Shown piece by piece: positions 3,201 through 48,872 of a DNA stretch of 64,000 nt. Location of the stretch: assembly GCA_028826165.1 (NCBI GenBank), contig JAPDFW010000125.1, forward strand, positions 620,001 to 684,000, read 5' to 3'. The notes under the pieces were generated by a model that was given only the letters and a program-made list of their open reading frames with translations, was not told the origin of the DNA and did not search any database. The stretch is from Anaeramoeba ignava BMAN (lineage: Eukaryota > Protista > Anaeramoebae). The number at the start of each line of letters is the position of its first letter. Within the stretch, counting starts at the first letter, position 1. A program made the position numbers and the translations under genes.

Positions 3201-3608
3201 TAATTTTATAAATGATTTTAATTTTGATTTTGATTTTAATTTTAATTTTAATTTTGATTTTAAATTTCATTTTAATTTTATAAATGATTTTGATTTTATA
3301 AATGATTTTAAATTTAAATGAAATTTCAAAAAATAAATACCAAGAGCATCATCAATATCAGATGAAATATCAGTATCAAAAATAAGAGGAACAGGTCTTT
3401 CTGGAATTTTAGGAGCATTTGTATGATTATTTTTTAATTCATTCTTTTCTTTTTGATTTTCAATAATTTCTTGAGCTTTTTTAGAAAAATTTAAAGCTTC
3501 TTTAAGTCTTGATTTAATTTTGGGAACAAGATTTTTTTCAAACTCTTCAATATTTCCATTTTGCATATCAAAATCAACTTTAATTTGTTTTGTTTGTGAA
3601 TTACCCAT
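202..3608 (-). CDS. Inosine/uridine-preferring nucleoside hydrolase family protein (554 aa, 9 exons)
   Basis: Exons 3608-3341, 2886-2206, 1709-1557, 1497-1407, 1305-1301, 918-851, 781-768, 673-658, 570-202 (all GT-AG, total 1665 nt). Motifs DTDISSDIDD (DxDxxxDD), LLGVTT, IPVFAG, IGGMTNIA, NVRQD..AA..VF, HDPLT. Confidence 0.9.
925..1297. repeat. Intronic (TTTTGA)n-type hexamer microsatellite (similar tracts at 1712-2190 and 2890-3330)
   Basis: Direct inspection; these lie in introns of the nucleoside hydrolase. Confidence 0.95.
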
Positions 3609-3706
3609 TTATTTTTTGTTTTTGAAAAATTGAAAAAAAATGAAAAGAAAAAATTTGATTGAAAAAAAAAAGTTTTTTTTTTGGAGTTTTGTAAATTAAA
3701 TGAGAA

Positions 3707-4960
3707 TCAATTGACAATTTCAGGAATTGCTGAAAATTGGTAATTAAAAAAGGATTTTGATGTTTCAGGTAAATTTTTTTGTTCAAATGAAAATTCTTTT
3801 TGTTTTCCATCTTTAAAAAAAGAAAAAATTGAAATAACTAAATTCTTTAAAACAACTGAACTAAATCTAACCATAGCATTGCCTTTTCTTGTTGAAAATA
3901 ATACATCTTTTGGAGCACTCTCTGAAATTGCCAAATCAATATTTGTGATCTTTTCTTGAATGGCTGTCATTTCATTCAAAATTATTTTGACAGTTTTTTG
4001 GTTCAATTGAAGAAAAGCAAATTCTTGAATTAAGTTTGTTTTCAGAACTAAACAAGCTATATTCATTTCTGATTGGGAAATGATTTGTTTTTTTAGATAT
4101 TCAAATGAATCCTTGTTGATATTTGGGTCATAGAAGAAAAAACGAGAAAAATACTCCTTTTCTTCATTTCTTTCTTTTACGCTTTCTAAATATTTCAATA
4201 GAAAATAGTGAACTACTTCAATAAATAGTTGAATTGATTTTTCATCTGGAAATTCAAACAAAGATTGTCTCATTTGTGAGTTGCTGAAAAAAGAAATGAG
4301 GAGTTGGTGCGGATGATTTTTACTGACAAAAAATTGGTATTCATGAAGACGAAGATCGAAAAATTCAATATCTTCATCCAAATCAAAAATTCCCATTTTT
4401 TCGTGATTCAATCTAATTTGGATTTTTTTCTTTTTTGTTGCATGAACACAATTGAAGTTGACTTTTCCTTTTTTATAATTGTTTTCGACAATTTCTTTGT
4501 TTTGATATTCTCTGTTGTTTTCGTTTATGAAAGTGAATATCGACAAACAAAACTCTTCAGGAAAAGTTGATTTTTGAATTTCTGGTTTTTTTGGTTCTTC
4601 TTTTTTATAAAAAGTAGATAAATGAGAAAATTCTGATTCCAAATATTTCCATTGATCAAATGAGATTGCAGTAATAAATAAGTCTTGATTTAATTGAGAT
4701 ATTTCAAAGTTAGAAAATATTTGAACTTTTGCAGGTTTTGGTTTAATTTCTTTATAAATTGATTCGTTTTCATTTATATTTTCATCTTCACTTGAATCTT
4801 CAATTAAATTTTCATTTTCACTTTCATTTGAATCTTCAATTAAATTTATATTTTTATTATTTTGTTCTTCTTGTAAATTATTTTCTTTTAAACTTTCTTG
4901 ATGATTTGTATTATTTTCAACTGATGAAGAAGTTGTTTCTGTTTCTTTTTGTTTTTCCAT
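3707..4960 (-). CDS. Hypothetical protein (417 aa) with acidic N-terminus and possible tandem PH-like folds
   Basis: Long intronless ORF with complex composition. The fold is only a guess from strand/helix patterning. Confidence 0.6.
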   Translation of the reverse strand: MEKQKETETTSSSVENNTNHQESLKENNLQEEQNNKNINLIEDSNESENENLIEDSSEDENINENESIYKEIKPKPAKVQIFSNFEISQLNQDLFITAISFDQWKYLESEFSHLSTFYKKEEPKKPEIQKSTFPEEFCLSIFTFINENNREYQNKEIVENNYKKGKVNFNCVHATKKKKIQIRLNHEKMGIFDLDEDIEFFDLRLHEYQFFVSKNHPHQLLISFFSNSQMRQSLFEFPDEKSIQLFIEVVHYFLLKYLESVKERNEEKEYFSRFFFYDPNINKDSFEYLKKQIISQSEMNIACLVLKTNLIQEFAFLQLNQKTVKIILNEMTAIQEKITNIDLAISESAPKDVLFSTRKGNAMVRFSSVVLKNLVISIFSFFKDGKQKEFSFEQKNLPETSKSFFNYQFSAIPEIVN

Positions 4961-5188
4961 TATTAAAAAAAAAAAAAAAGGAAAATGAATTTAAAAAATT
5001 TTGAATTTTTTTTTTTATAAAGAAAGAAAAAAATTAAAATTTTTTATTTTTAACTTTTTTGGAATGATTTGTTTTTAGTTTTAAATTAAGAATAAATTGA
5101 CTTCGTTTTTTTTATTAAAATTGAAAATTAAAAGTAAAAAATTAAATTGAAAAAAAAAGAAGATTAAATTTTGTTTTTGTTTTTGTTT

Positions 5189-8100
5189 TTAAAATTTTAA
5201 ATCTTTTCCTTTTTTTTTTCTTATTAAATCAATTGTAAGATGAATTTCAATTTCTTCTTTTTTTTCTTGATTTGTTTTTCCTCTTCTATTTGTATTATTT
5301 TCCTTAATAATTATTATTTTTTTTGATGTAAATTTGAAAATGTCTTCATTATTCAAAAGTTCTTTAACATTTTGCAAATAATCATTTTCATAATCATTTC
5401 TGAGATAAAATTCAATTAGTTTTTGTGTTTTATGACTTGTGATTAATTTCAATCCTCTTATGCAAAATTGTTCAAAAATTTTGATAAATTTCCATAAATA
5501 AAATCGACTAAAATTTCCAAAAATTTGTTCTGAAGTTGAGAAAAATTTTTCTTTAGAAATGGATTTTTGAAATAATTGTTCAATATTTTGCATAAATTTG
5601 CTGAATTTCTTATTACTTAATTCTTTTTTGATTTCCATTATTTGAGAATATAATAAATGATAAAATATTAAGAATTGATAAAAACGATTTTCACCATAAA
5701 AAATATTTATATTTGGATCATTTTTCTTTTTGTTTTTGTTTTTGTTTTCATTTTGATTTTCAGTTTCATTTTTGATTACTAATTTAATATGAGATGAAAG
5801 ATCTAAATTAAACATTTCATTTTCTAAATAAGAATAAAGAAAAGAAAAGAAGAATTATTAATTAATTTTTTTTAGAAGTTTTAAATAAAAATGAGATTAT
5901 TTTTTTTTCTTTCTTTAATTTACCATTTAAATTTTGATTTTGATTTTGATTTTGATTTTGATTTTCAATTTGATTTTGATTTTGATTTTGATTTTGATTT
6001 TGATTTTGATTTTGATTTTGATTTTGATTTGAATCTGATTCTGTATCCATTTCTGAATCTGTATTTTGATCTGATTCATTATCATTTTTTTCAGAAGAAT
6101 TCTCTTTATTTACTTTTTGATATTTAAATAAAAAGAAGAACAAAAAATTTTCAAAAAGATTTTGTAATTCTCGGAATTTAGGTTTAAATGATTCATTATC
6201 TAATCCAATATCATTTTCATTTTCATTTTCATTTTCAATTTCAATTACATTCTCATTTTCATTTTCTTCATTTTCATTTTCATTTTTGTTTTCGTTCTCA
6301 TTTTTGTTTTCATTTTCATTTTCATTTTCATTTTCGTTTTCGTTTTTGTTTTCGTTCTCGTTTTTGTTATTATTATTGTTATTTTCTTCTTGATTATTTT
6401 TTCGAGAATCATTGAAAAATTTCCCATAAAGATAATAATAAAATGGAGTTAAATGTTCTTTAATCGATTGTGGATTTTTTTTGTTGCTTAAAATATCTTT
6501 GATTTGAGTAAAATTCTTTTCAATATTTTTGAGTAACAAACTTATTTGTTCAAAAATTGATAAATCATGATAAATATGATTTATAGATGAATTTTTGAGA
6601 TTAATTTTCGATAAAGTATCTAAAAAAATGAATTTAAATTTTGAATTTAAATTTTAAATTTAAATTTTAATTTTAAATTGAATTTTTACTTCGTTCATTG
6701 TAATATTCTTCACAAAACGAATAAAAAGAAAAGCTATAAAAATCATTCCATTCTCTAAAGTTTTTCTCGATATTTCTGTTCCATTCATTTCTTAAATTCT
6801 CATATATTTTAGTTAATTGTTCAAAATTATCAACAACACGATGGAAAATAAAAGGAAGATATAATAAAGGATCTTTTTTCATAAGACCAATATAATGTTC
6901 AGTTTGTTCAAAAAAAGATGATTGAATAACTTGATAATTCTGTTTTTTTAAAACAATTTTGCTTATTCTTTTTTGAATATCCAAAATTTGATTTTCTTCA
7001 TTTTGATTTTCTTGATTTTTGATTTTTGGATGCTTTCAATAATTTTCAACACTTCTAACATATTAGTAACAAATCTTGAATGAAATTGAAGTAAATTTTT
7101 CAATCTTTCAATTTTGAATTTTAAATTATGATTAAAAGATTCATTGAAATCTTTATCAATCAACCAATCCTTATTGTCGATTTTTAGTTCATCTTTTCCA
7201 AACGGTTGAATTTGAATTGAATTAGGATTTGGTTTAATAACTTCATAAGCAAATTCTTCTTTAGTTATCAAAGGATCTTCAAGTATTTGTGAATTAAGTT
7301 TTTGTTTTATTTGCTTTTCATTGATTTTACTAACTACTCTTTTTGGTTGTTGAGTTTTCGGTGTTCTTGAAGGACGAGATAAAGGTCCCGCACCTCTTCC
7401 TCTTGGAGGTCTTCCTCTGGGTGTTTGTGTATTAGTAGTGTTGCTTGAATTCACTTTTTTTGGAGTTGCTTTTTTAGTTCGAGGTCTTTTTGGATTTGGA
7501 TGAGTTGGTGATTCCTCGTTTTGTTTTTGTGTATTTGATAAACCTCCTCTTTCTTGTTTGTTTTCTTCTTCTTTCTTGAGTTGTTTTTTGTTGTTAGAAT
7601 CCTCTGTTTGCATCTCTTTCCATTTATCTGTTTGAATGGTAATTAAAGAATCAATCATATCTAATAAAGTTCTATTTTCTTGGAAAATTTCAAACATTTC
7701 TTTTCTAAATGAATATTCAGGAATTTTATTGTTTTGAAATTGGTCTAATAAAAGCTCAAATGAATTTAAGGATTTTTTGTCATTTTGAAGTGAGTTTTTT
7801 AAATTTGTGATTAATTCTTTTTCGTTTTGATTTGATGGATTTAATTCTTTATTAATTTCTTTTTCTACAATTTTTTCAAATTTTTCAATTAAATTTTTAT
7901 CTTGTTGAAAAAGTTCTTTTCCTTTAAAAAGAAATGATTCAATGTTTAATTGGTTATTTTGATATTTTTGCATAAGTCCATTAAATTTTGAAATTATTTT
8001 TGGATTTTTAATTTGTTGTTGATTTAATTCAAGTAAAAATTCTTGAGGAATTTGAATTAGATTTGGATTTTTATTTCTAATTTAATAAAAAGAAAAAGAA

Positions 8101-8630: not shown

Positions 8631-11600
8631 ATGTCAATAAAAGTTGATCCTAAACATCTTGATTCAACTGGAAAAACAGATTTTCAAATCAGATTACATC
8701 TTATTGAATGTAGAGAACTTAAGGGAAAGTAAATAAATTAAAATTTTTTTTTTCTTAATATTTAAAAGCAAAAAATAATTTAATTTAATTTAAATTAAAA
8801 AATTTTTTTTTGCTTTTAAATTCCCTAATAAAAAGATTTCCGAATTAAATATAAAATTAAACACAAAATTAAACACAAAATTCAATATCAAATTCAATAT
8901 AAAATTAAATATAAAATTAAATATAAAATTAAATATCAAATTCAATATCAAATTAAATATCAAATTAAATATCTAATATTTATATTATTAAATTCAATTA
9001 AATATTTAATATTTATATTATTAAATTTAATTAAATATTTAATATTTATATTATTAAATTAAATTAAATATTTAATATTTATATTATTAAATTCAAATTA
9101 AATATTTAAAATTAAATATTAAAAAATTTAAATATAATTAAATATTTATATTTATATTATTAAATTTAATTAAATATTTAATATTTATATTATTAAATAT
9201 CAAATTAAATATTTAATATTTATATTATTAAATATCAAATTAAATATTTAATATTTATATTATTAAATATCAAATTAAATATTTAATATTTATATTATTA
9301 AATATCAAATTAAATATTTAATATTTATATTATTAAATATCAAATTAAATATTTAATATTTATATTATCAAATATCAAATTAAATATTTAATATTTATAT
9401 TATTAAATTTAATTAAATATTTAATATTTATATTATTAAATTTAATTAAATATTTAATATTTATATTATTAAATTTAATTAAATACTTAATATTTATATT
9501 ATTAAATATCAAATTAAACACAAAATTAAATATTTAATATTTATATTATTAAATATCAAATTAAACACAAATTAAATATTTAATATTTATATTATTAAAT
9601 TTAATTAAATATTTAATATTTATATTATTAAATTTAATTAAATATTTAATATTTATATTATTAAATATCAAATTAAATATTTAATATTTATATTATTAAA
9701 TTTATTTAAATATCTTAGAGGTTCAAATGCACTTAGTGATCCAGTAGGAGTTGTTTCTGTAGATGGAAAAAAACAAACTACAGAAGTTTTTAAAAATACA
9801 TTATCTTGTACTTTTGATCATTTAATGTTTTTTGAAAACAAATGGAAACCAGAAGAAACACAATCTAAAACAGTTTTGATACAAATTTATGATTCTAACA
9901 CAATTCGAAGAAATGTTTTAATTGTAAAATATTATTCAAATCAAAAATATTCCAAATAAAAATAATTATAAATATAAATATAAATATAAATATAAATATA
10001 AATATAAATATAAATATAAATATAAATATAAATATAAATATAAATATAAATATAAATATAAATATAAATATAAAATATAATATAAAATATAAAATATAAA
10101 TATAAATATAAATATAAATATAAATATAAATATAAATATAAATATAAATATAAATATAAATATAAATATAAATATAAATATAAATATAAATATAAATATA
10201 AATATAAATATAAATATAAATATAAATATAAATATAAATATTTAAAATATAAAATATAAAAAAATAAAAATATAAATAAAATATAAAATATAATATAAAA
10301 TATAAATATAAATATATTTAAAATATAAATATAAATATTTAAAATATAAATATAAATATTTAAAATATAAATATAAATATTTAAAATATAAATATAAATA
10401 TAAATATAATTATAAATATAAATAAATATAATTTAAAAATATAAATATAAATATAAATATAATTATAAATATAAATATAAATATAAATATAAATATAAAT
10501 ATAAATATAAATATAAAAATATAAATATAAATATAAATATAAATATAAATATAAATAATATAAATATAAATATCAATATAAATATAAATATTCATAAATA
10601 TTTAAATTAAAATGTCAAAAATTAGGGACAATACGGTCTCGATATCCCATTTGTTCACGGAGAAAAAGGTCATGAAATCTGGCATCGTTGGGCAATTATA
10701 ATCAATCCAGAAAAAGAAACCGGAGCACAAGGATTCATTAAATTTTCATGCACAGTTTTAGGACCAGGAGACGAATCACCAACTCACGAAAACGATGATC
10801 TTGATGATGATGCCGAAAAAGAAGAGCCAGATAAACCTCAAGATCTACAATCACTGATTCTGCGCCCACCACAACTTGATATTGTAGGATATCAACTGAG
10901 TATATTTTGTTACCGCGCTGAAGATTTACCTAAAATGGATACTTTTGGAAAAGTTGATCCTTTTATCGAAGCTCATTTCGGTGGAAATAAATTATTAAGA
11001 ACAAAAGTTAAGAAGAAGACCTTCACACCTGTTTGGAACGAGGAATTGCGTCTTCCAGCTTATGTGCCAAGCCTGTCAAACTCAATTGAGATCAAGTTAT
11101 TTGATTGGGAAAGATCATCCAAAAATAACGATCTTATTTCAAGTACTTACTTCAGATTTTCTGACGTGCAAATGCAAACCGTCTCACCAAGATGGGTTAA
11201 CTTCTATGGACCACCAAAAGGCAATGTGAGAACAATGTTCAAAAAAGGTCATACTGAGGAAACAGAGTATAAAGGAAGAGCGTTACTTGCGCTCCAAGCA
11301 TCTCCTTATGAAAACCCTGTTTTGGAAGCTACTCCTGTTAATTCTTGCAAAGAACCTCAAGTCGAGAAATATGTGATTCGGTTTGATTTATTCGAGGGTA
11401 ATGAATTCAATACAAACGCGTTGGAAAATTGTTTTGTCGAACTTTCTATCGGAAAAAATTTGATCAGAAGTAAAACACTTTCCACAAAAAAAGGAACTGT
11501 CAGTTGGTATGAACAGTTAAAGGATTTTGTTGTTGAATTCCCAGCAGATATAACACAGATTCCGGATTTGTTCATTAATGTATATTTCAAAAACAAAATG

Positions 11601-44658: not shown

Positions 44659-46472
44659 TTAAATCAAAGAACAAAGTTTCTTTTTCTTTGGTTTCTCAAC
44701 TTTTTCTGTATCATCTTGATTTAACTTTTTTTTCCATTTCCGAATTTCACGAACAAGTTCTTCAAAACATTGAGGAACATTCATTCCAGTTTTTGCAGAA
44801 CTAAAAAAAAATATCAAAAAAATTTATAAATTTAGATTATTTTTGATTAGATTATTTTTAATTGAATTATTTTTTAAATTTGAATTATTTTTGATTGGAT
44901 TATTTTTGATTAAATTATTTTTGATTAAATTATTTTTTAAATTTGGATTATTTTTGATTGGATTATTTTTGATTAAATTATTTTATAAATTTGGATTATT
45001 TTTGATTAAATTATTTTTGATTAAATTATTTTTGATTAGATTATTTTATAAATTTGAATTATTTTTGATTGGATTATTTTTGATTAAATTTGAATTATTT
45101 TTGATTGAATTATTTTTGATTAAATTATTTTTGATTAAATTTAGATTATTTTTGATTAAATTATTTTTGATTAAATTATTTTTGATTAAATTATTTTTGA
45201 TTAAATTATTTTATAAATTTAGATTATTTTTGATTAAATTATTTTTGATTAAATTATTTTTTACGTTTCCATAAATTTTGATTTAAAAGATGAAGAGAGT
45301 TCTTGACCTTGTTGATATGTTATTCGTCTTTCATTTTCTAAATCTAAAAATTTAATAAATAAATAAATAAATAATTTAAAAAAGAATTTTGATTGGTTTT
45401 TTTTTTCTTAAAAAAATACCTGCTTTATTTCCAACAGTAATAACAGGAGTATAACAATATTCTTTTATTCTTTGAAGTGTTTGATGAAAATTTTTTGCTT
45501 CAACAAAACTTGGGTCTGAAGTTACACTATAAACGATAATAAAACCTTCTCCAGTTTGAAAATACTAATAATTTTATTTAAATTCAAAAAAGTAAAAATT
45601 TTTTTGATTTGTTTTTGTATTTATTTAAAAAAAAAATAATTTAATTCATACTTTATCACGAATTGAACGGTATTCATCTTGACCTGCAGTATCTAAAACT
45701 TCTAATAATGTTGGTTCTTGGTCTATAATAACCATTTTTCTATAACTTTCCTCTAAAAATTTATAAATTTATAATTAAAATTAAAATTAAATTTATAATT
45801 AAAATTGATATTAAATTTATAATTAAAATTGATATTGAATTTAAAATTTAAAATTGATATTAAATTTATAATTAAAATTGGTATTAAATTTATAATTAAA
45901 ATTGGTTTTAAATTTATAATTAAAATTGATATTAAATTTATAATTTAAATTGATATTAAATTTATAATTTAAAATTGATATTAAATTTATAATTAAAATT
46001 GATATTAAATTTATAATTTAAATTGATATTAAATTTATAATTTAAATATAATTAAAAATTGATATTAAATTTATAATTAAAATTGATATTAAATTTATAA
46101 TTAAAATTGATATTAAATTTATAATTAAAATTGGTATTAAATTTATAATTTAAAATTGATATTAAATTTAAAATTTAAAATTGGTTTTTCTCATAAAAAA
46201 AATTTTTTTACCAATTGTTGGATCATAATCTTCAACAAATTTACTTTGAAGATATCTTAAAGTTAAACAAGATTTCCCAACTGATTTTTTCAATAAATTA
46301 AAATAAAATAAAATGATCAATTTAAGTTTTATCAAATCAATTAAAAAAAATTTTTTTTAATTAGGATCAAATTGGTTTATTTTGAATTATTATTTATTAT
46401 TTTGTTTTAAAATGTTTTAAAATTACCAGATCCTGAACCAACAACAACAATTTTGCAAGATTCTTCTGACAT
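44659..46472 (-). CDS. Ras-family small GTPase (193 aa) with CaaX
   Basis: Exons 46472-46427, 46280-46212, 45752-45652, 45564-45420, 45343-45265, 44800-44659. [40 protein letters not shown]. Confidence 0.95.
44830..45260. repeat. Intronic 15-nt repeat (TTATTTTTGATTAAA)n
   Basis: Last intron of Ras. Confidence 0.9.
45790..46185. repeat. Intronic 24-nt repeat (AAATTGATATTAAATTTATAATTA)n
   Basis: Ras intron 2. Confidence 0.9.
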
Positions 46473-46684: not shown

Positions 46685-48872
46685 TCATTTTAATTCTTTA
46701 AGAATTTGAATTAAATTTTTCAATCCAAAAACAAAACCATCTTCATCTTGACCTTCTGGAATATTATCATAACTATGAGCGAAATCAATCCAATAAAGTT
46801 TTGGATTTAATTTTCCTTCTCCATCATAAAGGAATAATAAACTTGAAGAAAATGAACGAAGTTTTTTAAATTGAATCATTAAATCATAAAATTTTTCGAT
46901 TTTCTCCAAGTAAAATTTCTGAAGTTCTTCAAAAAATTCAACTCCATTAAAGAAGAATTGGTATAATTCTTTTGGAAATTGTTCTTTTGGCATTGTTTGT
47001 CCAACTTTTCTTTCAAATTTAGTAAATTCTTTCTTTTCTTTCAAATATACCTTTTTGGATTAAATAAATATTAAAATAAATATTAAATAAATATTAAATA
47101 ATAAATATAAAATATTAAATATTAAATAAATATTAAATATTAAAATAATAAATATTAAATATTAAATATTAAAATAATAAATATTAAATAATAAATATAA
47201 AATAATAAATATAAAATATTAAATATTAAATATTAAAATAAATAATAAATAATAAATAATAAATAATAAATATTAAATATTAAATATTAAATATTAAAAT
47301 TAATATTAAATTTAAATAAAAATAAACTACTTTTCTTCCAGCTAATCTGAATCCTAAAGAAGAAGAAGTAGATTTTAAACATTTCTCAGTTTGAATTCTA
47401 GCTTTTTCAGGATCAGCATCCAAACCATGACCACGAGTACCCATTTTAATATCCATCATACAAGGTTTTGAATAACCAGCAGTTAAATCGTCCATAACAA
47501 TATATCTAACATAACCATCAGGAACTGATTTTGAAGTAGCAAGATCATTTATCATAAATTCTCTCATTGACTCCCCTTTTTTGAGTTTCTCTGAACTTAA
47601 ATCAACATATCCCATTGCTTGTGGAACAAATGGAAGAAAACAATTCAATTCTTTTTTTGATGATAAAAGATGATAAAAATCTCCTTCTAATTGTAAACAT
47701 GGTTTGCAAACTTTGTTTCCTTTTAATTTCAATAAAGAACCATGTCCTCCAACTTGATTATTAAATGTTCCTTGGATTAATATTTCACACTAATTAATAA
47801 TTTTTGATCCAATTTTTAAATTTGGAAAATATTTTGAATTTTTCTTTTAAAAAATAATTGAACAAATTTTTTTCCGATTTTGAAAATTCGGAAAAAAAAA
47901 GATTTAAATGGAAGATAAAATAATTTACTTCTTCAACTTTTTTCTGAACAGATTTAGTGATTAACTTTAATTAGAAAAAAATAAAATTAAAATTAAAATT
48001 AAAATTAAAATTAAAATTCAAAATTAAAATACATCTTGAATATCTTCGGTTTTTTTAACAGAAACTTCATAGAAAAGTGCTTTGTTTTTGTTTGCAAATT
48101 CTCCAATTTCTTCACTTTTAATAACTTTTTCATTTTCACTATCATTTTTATTTCCAACAATTACTAATAAAGAATTTCTTTTGAATTGAAATGGAACAAA
48201 ATTAATCCAATGTTCTAAATTTTGGAAACTTTCTCGACTTTGTTTTTTTCAAATAAATAAAAAATTGAATAAAATAAAATTAAAAAAATATTAGAAAATA
48301 AATTATTTACTTTTTCAAATCAAAAACAAAAAAATAAATTTGAAATGTTGAAAAAATTGATTCAATTTCATTTGCTAGTTCAAGTTTTCCAGGCTAAAAT
48401 ATAAATTGATTAAAAAAATAAAACAAAGAAAAAGAAATTATAAGGAAAAAAGTGGAAAATATTTTTTTTACTGTATCAAATAAAGTAAGTTCAACAACAA
48501 TATCATTGACTTGAATTTTTGATGTTTGTGTTAATTTTTGGAGTTTTTCTGTTGGAACATAATCTAAAAAAAAAGAAATCAAAAATTTAAATCAAAAATT
48601 TTTTTATCATTTTAAAAGAAAATTTTACTTGTTTCGATTGGTTTTTGGAAAAGGAATTGAGAAATAATTGAAGTTTTTCCAACTCCTAATTAATAAAATA
48701 ATAAATAATTAAGAATAAGAATTATTAAAAAAAAAAAAAGCAAAAATATATTATTTTAATTAATTAAATTGTGAAATTAATTTTTATTAAGGAATAATTA
48801 AAAGAAATGATTTGGTTCGTTTTTTAAAAGAAATTTACCCGAATCACCCAAAAGAATTAAATTCAAATCCAT
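46685..48872 (-). CDS. Fusion of a Rab/Ras-like GTPase and an inositol polyphosphate kinase (IPK family), 443 aa
   Basis: Exons 48872-48839, 48685-48629, 48563-48472, 48393-48311, 48237-48033, 47964-47929, 47789-47331, 47050-46685 (1332 nt). GDSGVGKT, DTPGK, NKND, EVSVK; then QVGGH, PCMMDIKMG, SSSLL, IDFAH. Confidence 0.82.

Follow-up and report, generated by a model that had tools for sequence, protein, structure and literature searches.

A candidate Rab-like GTPase domain fused to an inositol polyphosphate kinase in the protist Anaeramoeba ignava

In a 64,000-nucleotide (nt) stretch of the Anaeramoeba ignava BMAN genome (GenBank assembly GCA_028826165.1, contig JAPDFW010000125.1, positions 620,001 to 684,000 of the forward strand; the whole of this stretch is referred to here as the window, and coordinates are those of the window unless another sequence is named), the minus strand from 48872 to 46685 is very probably occupied by a single spliced gene in which a small GTPase (G) domain and an inositol polyphosphate kinase (IPK) are fused, as judged from its splice signals and reading frames. 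The overall explanation towards which we lean is that this is a lineage-specific protein of 443 amino acids (aa) whose G domain, lacking a lipid anchor, would serve to dock the kinase. The signalling molecules made by kinases of the IP6K/IPMK family couple vesicle traffic to the energy and phosphate status of the cell, and the subcellular targeting of these kinases is poorly understood. The fusion suggests that inositol phosphate synthesis and Rab-type switches are physically connected, and offers a natural experiment in which the stand-alone kinase of a sister species is the control. Its value is limited in that it concerns one gene of one species that is already deposited and whose function is predicted from sequence; it is an accessory-domain variant of a known kinase family, seen once.

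The gene model was built from the sequence and comprises eight exons and seven introns, all of them GT..AG and between 65 and 280 nt long. Joined together, the exons make 1332 nt, or 443 codons followed by TGA, with frames checked by script, which bears out the 443-aa spliced protein put forward in an original prediction made from the DNA letters. The product is a letter-for-letter match to a public A. ignava record of 443 aa, KAJ5067753.1 (UniProt A0A9Q0R5Z3; P0001 in our set), and an exhaustive HMMER search with exon 7 as the query found the exon in that record at residues 170-322 with 100% identity. Exons were searched one by one, whereas full-length searches used the public record. The fusion model is already publicly deposited, though not described as a fusion, the public name being only "inositol polyphosphate kinase"; the literature searched holds no mention of a GTPase-IPK fusion, and the gene goes unmentioned in the A. 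ignava genome paper and in its supplements (PMC11550330). Exons have a G+C content of 22-32%, introns of 2-16% and the window of about 19%, a composition that agrees with the published BMAN genome (80.65% A+T overall, 91.86% A+T in introns; PMC11550330). The parts of the gene, all on the minus strand, are as follows.

48839..48872, minus strand: exon 1, with the ATG and the first half of the P-loop (MDLNLILLGDSG); donor G/GTAAAT, phase 1.
48629..48685, minus strand: exon 2, with the remainder of G1 (VGKT) and helix 1; acceptor TTAATTAG, donor GTAAAA.
48472..48563, minus strand: exon 3, with switch I (YVPTEK, including T35) and the strand up to FDT, as placed by the model, the alignment and the motif positions.
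48311..48393, minus strand: exon 4, with the remainder of G3 (DT/PGK; Lys64 at the position of the catalytic Gln) and switch II.
48033..48237, minus strand: exon 5, with G4 NKND (48141-48152) and G5 SVK (48054-48062); matches Pfam Ras by itself at 3e-11.
47929..47964, minus strand: exon 6, with the end of the last G-domain helix (LITKSVQKKVEE; helix 152-174 of the AlphaFold2 model), no stop codon and no Cys.
47790..47928, minus strand: intron 6, the fusion joint, 139 nt, GTAAAT..TTAATTAG, phase 0/0, no ATG, 16% G+C.
47844..47845, minus strand: alternative AG acceptor within intron 6, whose use would give a G-only protein of 186 aa with a 17-aa tail and the stop TAG at 47792-47790.
47331..47789, minus strand: exon 7, with the linker, the N-lobe, QVGGH (47742-47756), K198 in VCKP (47700-47711) and PCMMDIKMG (47439-47465); Pfam IPK at 1e-18.
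47051..47330, minus strand: intron 7, 280 nt, 2% G+C, repeats of the ATATTTA/ATTATTT type, phase 0.
46685..47050, minus strand: exon 8, with the C-lobe, SSLL (46835-46846), IDFAH (46775-46789) and the stop TGA (46685-46687); Pfam IPK at 1e-20 and EhIP6KA at 2e-12.

Intron 5 (47965-48032) consists largely of (AATTTT)n, and introns 5 and 7 are essentially microsatellites.

Both domains are recognized in the full-length protein. A Pfam scan for the combined architecture, which had been proposed as a check, places Ras (PF00071) at residues 5-165 (1e-27; 97.1 bits against a cut-off of 21.6) and IPK (PF03770) at residues 265-440 (4e-46; 157.7 bits against a cut-off of 22.2) on the same record. Within the G domain (residues 1-168), the nucleotide-binding motifs G1, the G2 Thr, DxxG, NKxD and SxK are all kept, in the form of GDSGVGKT (9-16), T35 in YVPTEK, DTPGK (60-64), NKND (118-121) and SVK (148-150). 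Motif positions and alignment thus agree with the earlier claim that G1, G4 and G5 are intact and that G3 reads DTPGK without the catalytic Gln, Lys64 being aligned with the Gln of DTAGQ in the nearest relatives. This was read from our alignment A3; two other alignments (A1 and A2) placed G-domain relatives onto the kinase half, whereas both blocks were correctly aligned in the smaller A3, on which the fold prediction was based.

How far the G domain deserves the name Rab-like, as it was originally called, depends on the feature considered. Its best solved-structure matches are Rabs, and in this respect the label stands; the switch motifs of the Rab family and the lipid anchor are absent, and in this respect it does not. 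In alignment A3 a Rab1-like row reads TIGVDF, KLQIWDTAGQERF and YYRGA where the fusion protein has TEKLQK, ELTLFDTPGKLEL and FSTFQ, and motifs of the IGVDF, KLQIWDTAGQE and YYRGA type are missing from the latter. Neither the spliced nor the unspliced reading contains a C-terminal Cys prenylation motif, in line with its predicted absence: in the spliced protein the end of the G domain passes directly into the kinase, and the tail of the unspliced reading is free of Cys. The top solved-structure match is Entamoeba EhRabX3 (PDB 5c1t; 1.7e-21). Paralogues within the genome are at best about 30% identical, and a collection of 5.8 billion proteins yielded no orthologue of the G domain, the best matches reaching no more than 36% identity and none coming from A. 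flamelloides. On its sequence, the G domain is best described as an orphan, anchor-less, Rab-like domain. Among its closest outside relatives, three proteins (P0212, P0224 and P0229) carry tandem double G domains in a layout like that of EhRabX3.

The kinase half (residues ~178-443) is covered by exons 7 and 8, each of which passes the Pfam IPK threshold singly. It carries QVGGH at 181-185 and K198, and the family motifs PxxxDxKxG, SSLL and IDF, on which its assignment had been based, were located as PCMMDIKMG (278-286), SSLL (391-394) and IDFAH (410-414). D282 is nearly invariant in alignment A1, and K198 is invariant or nearly so in A1 and A2. SSLL and IDFAH coincide with their counterparts in EhIP6KA and human IPMK, two kinases with which this half aligns along its length. 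Taken simply as bit scores, animal IP6K1 gave about 114 and Kcs1 89-98; the human IPMK core scored 80 and IPMK-labelled proteins 61-80, with EhIP6KA at 78 and IP3K at 35-47. Judged by sequence, this half is a complete and apparently active IPK-family kinase of the IP6K/IPMK type.

The A. ignava genome holds two IPK-family loci, namely the fusion gene and an unfused paralogue on contig C83 (L001, G000:C83:18688-22041, 652-2090), which was checked for a G domain and has none. In this paralogue the N-lobe and the PxxxDxKxG motif are split by about 250 residues of Asn/Ser-rich low complexity, and the frame changes from 0 to 2 around 1830-1956, which may reflect a small intron or a frameshift. InsP6 and pyrophosphate metabolism in A. 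ignava is plausible because the same genome encodes an IP5 2-kinase and two PPIP5K loci.

Structure prediction agrees with the domain assignments. AlphaFold2, run on alignment A3, folded both domains, with a mean predicted local distance difference test (pLDDT) of 82.8 and a predicted template modelling score (pTM) of 0.61, and the ESM Atlas model of the same sequence shows the same two folds (pLDDT 0.82). Foldseek matched the kinase half to human IPMK (3.4e-15; template modelling score, TMt, of 0.78-0.80) and to EhIP6KA (TMt 0.76-0.78), and the G domain to Rab4/5/6 (TMt 0.86-0.91; root-mean-square deviation 1.6-1.8 A). The last helix of the G domain (152-174) leads almost directly into QVGGH, and the 12 linker residues 171-182 have a pLDDT below 50. 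The model thus resembles two separate globules tethered by a short linker, and no interface between them is predicted with confidence.

The case for a single gene turns on intron 6. At its natural end the G-domain frame has no stop codon and runs exactly up to a GTAAAT donor, and the end of exon 6 confirms the phase-0 donor (GAA/GTAAAT) that had been placed at 47929; on the other side, exon 7 starts at 47789, directly after the TAG at 47792-47790 that had been taken as a phase-0 acceptor. The donor is of a consensus type also seen at donors 1 and 4, and intron 1 shares the acceptor TTAATTAG. Two AG acceptors lie at least 40 nt past the donor, and only the one at 47789 keeps the frame into the kinase. 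It had also been claimed that the kinase lacks an upstream ATG, and we found none in the 139 nt of intron 6 (47928-47790) nor anywhere between 48034 and the kinase exon, while the ATG at 48034, the nearest one upstream on the sense strand, lies in another frame. Within the kinase, the frame offers no Met before residue 228, and a separate kinase transcript could only yield a truncated enzyme, because a start at Met228 removes both QVGGH and the ATP-binding Lys, K198.

The alternative to a single gene is that a predictor merged two: a G protein of 186-216 aa that ends inside 47928-47790, and a kinase made from its own transcript, with a non-AUG start, a start at Met228 or an unseen first exon. 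Several observations weigh against the fusion or favour this alternative. The public model of KAJ5067753.1 was made by an automatic predictor. The 139 nt of intron 6 are in the range of local intergenic spacers (102 and 213 nt), and its G+C content of 0.16 is above that of all six other introns and close to the 0.15 of the downstream intergenic spacer, a value that fits an intron born from spacer and equally fits plain spacer. The alternative acceptor at 47845-47844 could give a G-only isoform, so that two isoforms are conceivable. A search of the 5.8-billion-protein collection with residues 100-240 returned no junction-spanning protein fragments (78-247 aa), although this blank says little. 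The A. flamelloides orthologue is a stand-alone gene, and since the fusion is known from one gene in one species, conservation of the fusion or of the G domain is not demonstrable. Nonetheless, two genes would leave a kinase without any ATG between 48034 and its exon, and a start at Met228 would strip QVGGH and the ATP-binding Lys from an otherwise intact enzyme. The G-domain frame also ends exactly on a consensus donor, the acceptor matches the one seen in intron 1, and reading on through the unspliced sequence would add 47 residues that look non-coding. We therefore regard a merger of two genes as improbable. Intron 6 contains an 11-bp hairpin at 47862-47893 of the minus strand (UUUUUUUCCGA, a 10-nt loop and UCGGAAAAAAA), whose core CCGA/TCGG lies at 47873-47892 and which holds about one in three of the G/C bases of the intron. 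When the intron was examined for repeated or structured elements, the fold of its whole length was no better than that of shuffled sequence (z = -0.5), and the core motif of the hairpin is unique in the window.

The closest relative of the kinase is a 275-aa protein of A. flamelloides (KAJ3451321.1 / KAJ6231689.1; P0016 and P0265), which is 37% identical over 267 residues, a figure to be set beside the mean identity of 37.3% between orthologues of the two species (PMC11550330). It shares the compact core of about 270 aa and all kinase motifs with the A. ignava protein, but it is stand-alone and lacks a G domain, and its gene is intronless and has its own ATG, the protein starting MSVAKHQVGG with five codons before HQVGG. 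A tblastn search detected no similarity to the G domain within 8 kb on either side of this gene. Because the A. flamelloides kinase stands alone in this way, the fusion, as far as sequence comparison allows, is lineage-specific, having arisen, or survived, only on the A. ignava side. Genes are spaced far more loosely at the A. flamelloides locus (JANTQA010000010.1; L013) than at that of A. ignava, with about 4.5 kb without a called gene upstream of the IPK gene (3516-8000) and a long (GT)n/(CA)n tract downstream of it (10024-10274).

The architecture was not encountered in other proteins either, in agreement with the original statement that no other IPK is known to carry a G domain. With the kinase exon as the query, HMMER returned 2234 hits (E <0.001), and among the 150 best of these none of the other 149 has a G domain. 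PF00071 and PF03770 occur together only in P0001 among the 120 listed matches of a word search that had the whole protein as its query (candidates of 244-775 aa), ESM Atlas has no cluster with both the Ras and the IPK families, and the literature searched was equally silent. Three metagenomic protist proteins (P0151, P0159 and P0225) combine an EF-hand pair with an IPK core, one of them also with a PH domain, and their EF hands would be built-in Ca2+ sensors.

What might the G domain do for the kinase? We propose that, within the single polypeptide, the G domain (1-168), which a linker of some 12 residues connects with the kinase (~178-443), would bind GTP-Mg, as the presence of G1, the G2 Thr, the Asp and Gly of G3, G4 and G5 suggests. 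It would probably hydrolyse GTP poorly by itself, since Lys64 replaces the catalytic Gln as in EhRabX3 and in Ras Q61K, where a Lys occupies the equivalent position. A mostly GTP-bound G domain could then act as a docking module that holds the kinase on a partner of the Rab-effector type, such that inositol phosphates or pyrophosphates would be made locally at a site of membrane traffic. Docking is favoured because the G domain lacks a lipid anchor and is not predicted to form a fixed interface with the kinase, and it would fit the hugely expanded Rab/TBC machinery of A. ignava (PMC11550330) and the links between IP6K and vesicle traffic (PMC11065760). Granted that the fusion is real, we put this mechanism at a little short of an even chance. 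One consideration counts against it: TBC-type Rab GTPase-activating proteins (GAPs) supply a Gln in trans, so that regulated hydrolysis could take place in spite of Lys64.

We hold docking to be likelier than an allosteric switch that directly turns catalysis on and off, the guanine-nucleotide-gated kinase of the original prediction, which drew no support from the analyses made. Here the nucleotide state would pass through the linker to the QVGGH loop and turn the kinase on or off. Only a handful of residues separate helix 152-174 from QVGGH, and the ROCO kinases are a precedent for a GTPase and a kinase of one chain in which the former acts on the latter in cis. In IPK kinases the N-terminal loop has been described as a functional G-loop for nucleotide binding (PMC10897400), and the loop of the QVGGH region contacts ATP in this family. 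Against such a switch, the low-confidence linker and the pTM of 0.61, with no confident interface, are weak, model-derived evidence that argues against tight allosteric coupling; Lys64 predicts a domain that would rarely switch unaided, and Pfam detects no dimerisation or transmission module of the COR type. We consider a GTP switch unlikely.

It is a little less likely still that the fusion is real but its G domain is an inert passenger or a pseudo-GTPase scaffold, the outcome of a recent, tolerated read-through in which nucleotide state is irrelevant. This presumes a genome that shuffles Rab-like domains freely, and it would suit an orphan domain whose paralogues are about 30% identical and whose outside matches stay at or below 36%, and which has neither a lipid anchor nor the switch motifs of the Rab family, and no catalytic Gln. 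That A. flamelloides manages without the G domain, and that intron 6 resembles intergenic spacer in its G+C content, point in the same direction. By contrast, a decaying passenger would not be expected to keep every nucleotide-binding motif except the Gln, nor to be predicted with confidence as a complete Rab-like fold.

Membership of the ROCO family was rejected because a Pfam scan of the whole protein shows no COR family. ROCO proteins of the LRRK2 type (Roc, COR and protein kinase) likewise combine a kinase with a Ras-like G domain in a single chain, and Pfam Roc does match residues 5-121 of the fusion protein (1.4e-15), but the Ras family scores better, COR is lacking and the kinase of the fusion would act on small-molecule inositol phosphates instead of protein.

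Other known systems each share one half of the arrangement or its logic. IP6K/Kcs1, IPMK and EhIP6KA (PDB 4o4b-4o4f) have QVxGH, the N-lobe Lys, PxxxDxKxG, SSLL, IDFxH and the fold in common with the kinase half (TMt 0.76-0.80), but none of them carries a G domain. Conversely, EhRabX3 is also Rab-like and has Gly-Lys in place of Gly-Gln in its G3 motif (DIVGK), but it consists of two tandem G domains without a kinase, and its identity to the G domain of the fusion is low. In the EF-hand-IPK proteins a sensor module is likewise attached to an IPK core, and IP3K is regulated by calmodulin; in both cases the sensor reads Ca2+ and not guanine nucleotide. In mammals, IP6K1, GRAB and Rab3A functionally connect an IP6K with a Rab GTPase in vesicle release; unlike in the fusion, separate proteins interact here in trans, and their interaction does not depend wholly on catalysis (PMC11065760).

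In our estimate it is unlikely that this is the first inositol phosphate kinase to carry its own small-GTPase domain as a direct determinant of where it is located or how active it is. If it were so, GTP occupancy, or a Rab cycle of GAPs and guanine nucleotide exchange factors (GEFs), would be wired straight into the synthesis of soluble inositol phosphates and pyrophosphates, and Rosetta-stone logic would point to a general functional link between Rabs and IP6K in eukaryotes. The fusion would in addition add to the evidence that membrane traffic in Anaeramoeba has diversified through the shuffling of G domains.

Other Ras-type genes occur nearby and elsewhere in the genome. On the same strand of the window, starting 214 nt past the stop codon of the fusion gene, lies a canonical multi-exon Ras-type GTPase gene (45300-46471, minus strand), which has LDTAGQDEY with the catalytic Gln intact and one intron of about 470 nt composed of repeat units of some 30 nt each. 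On contig C60 a tandem array (L007-L009, G000:C60:782435-786998, with matches across C60:775081-793966) consists of intronless Ras-like genes for proteins of about 200-220 aa, which keep the P-loop, YDPTIED, NKND and SAK and have a degenerate G3, with LDYHYYDE for DTAGQE.

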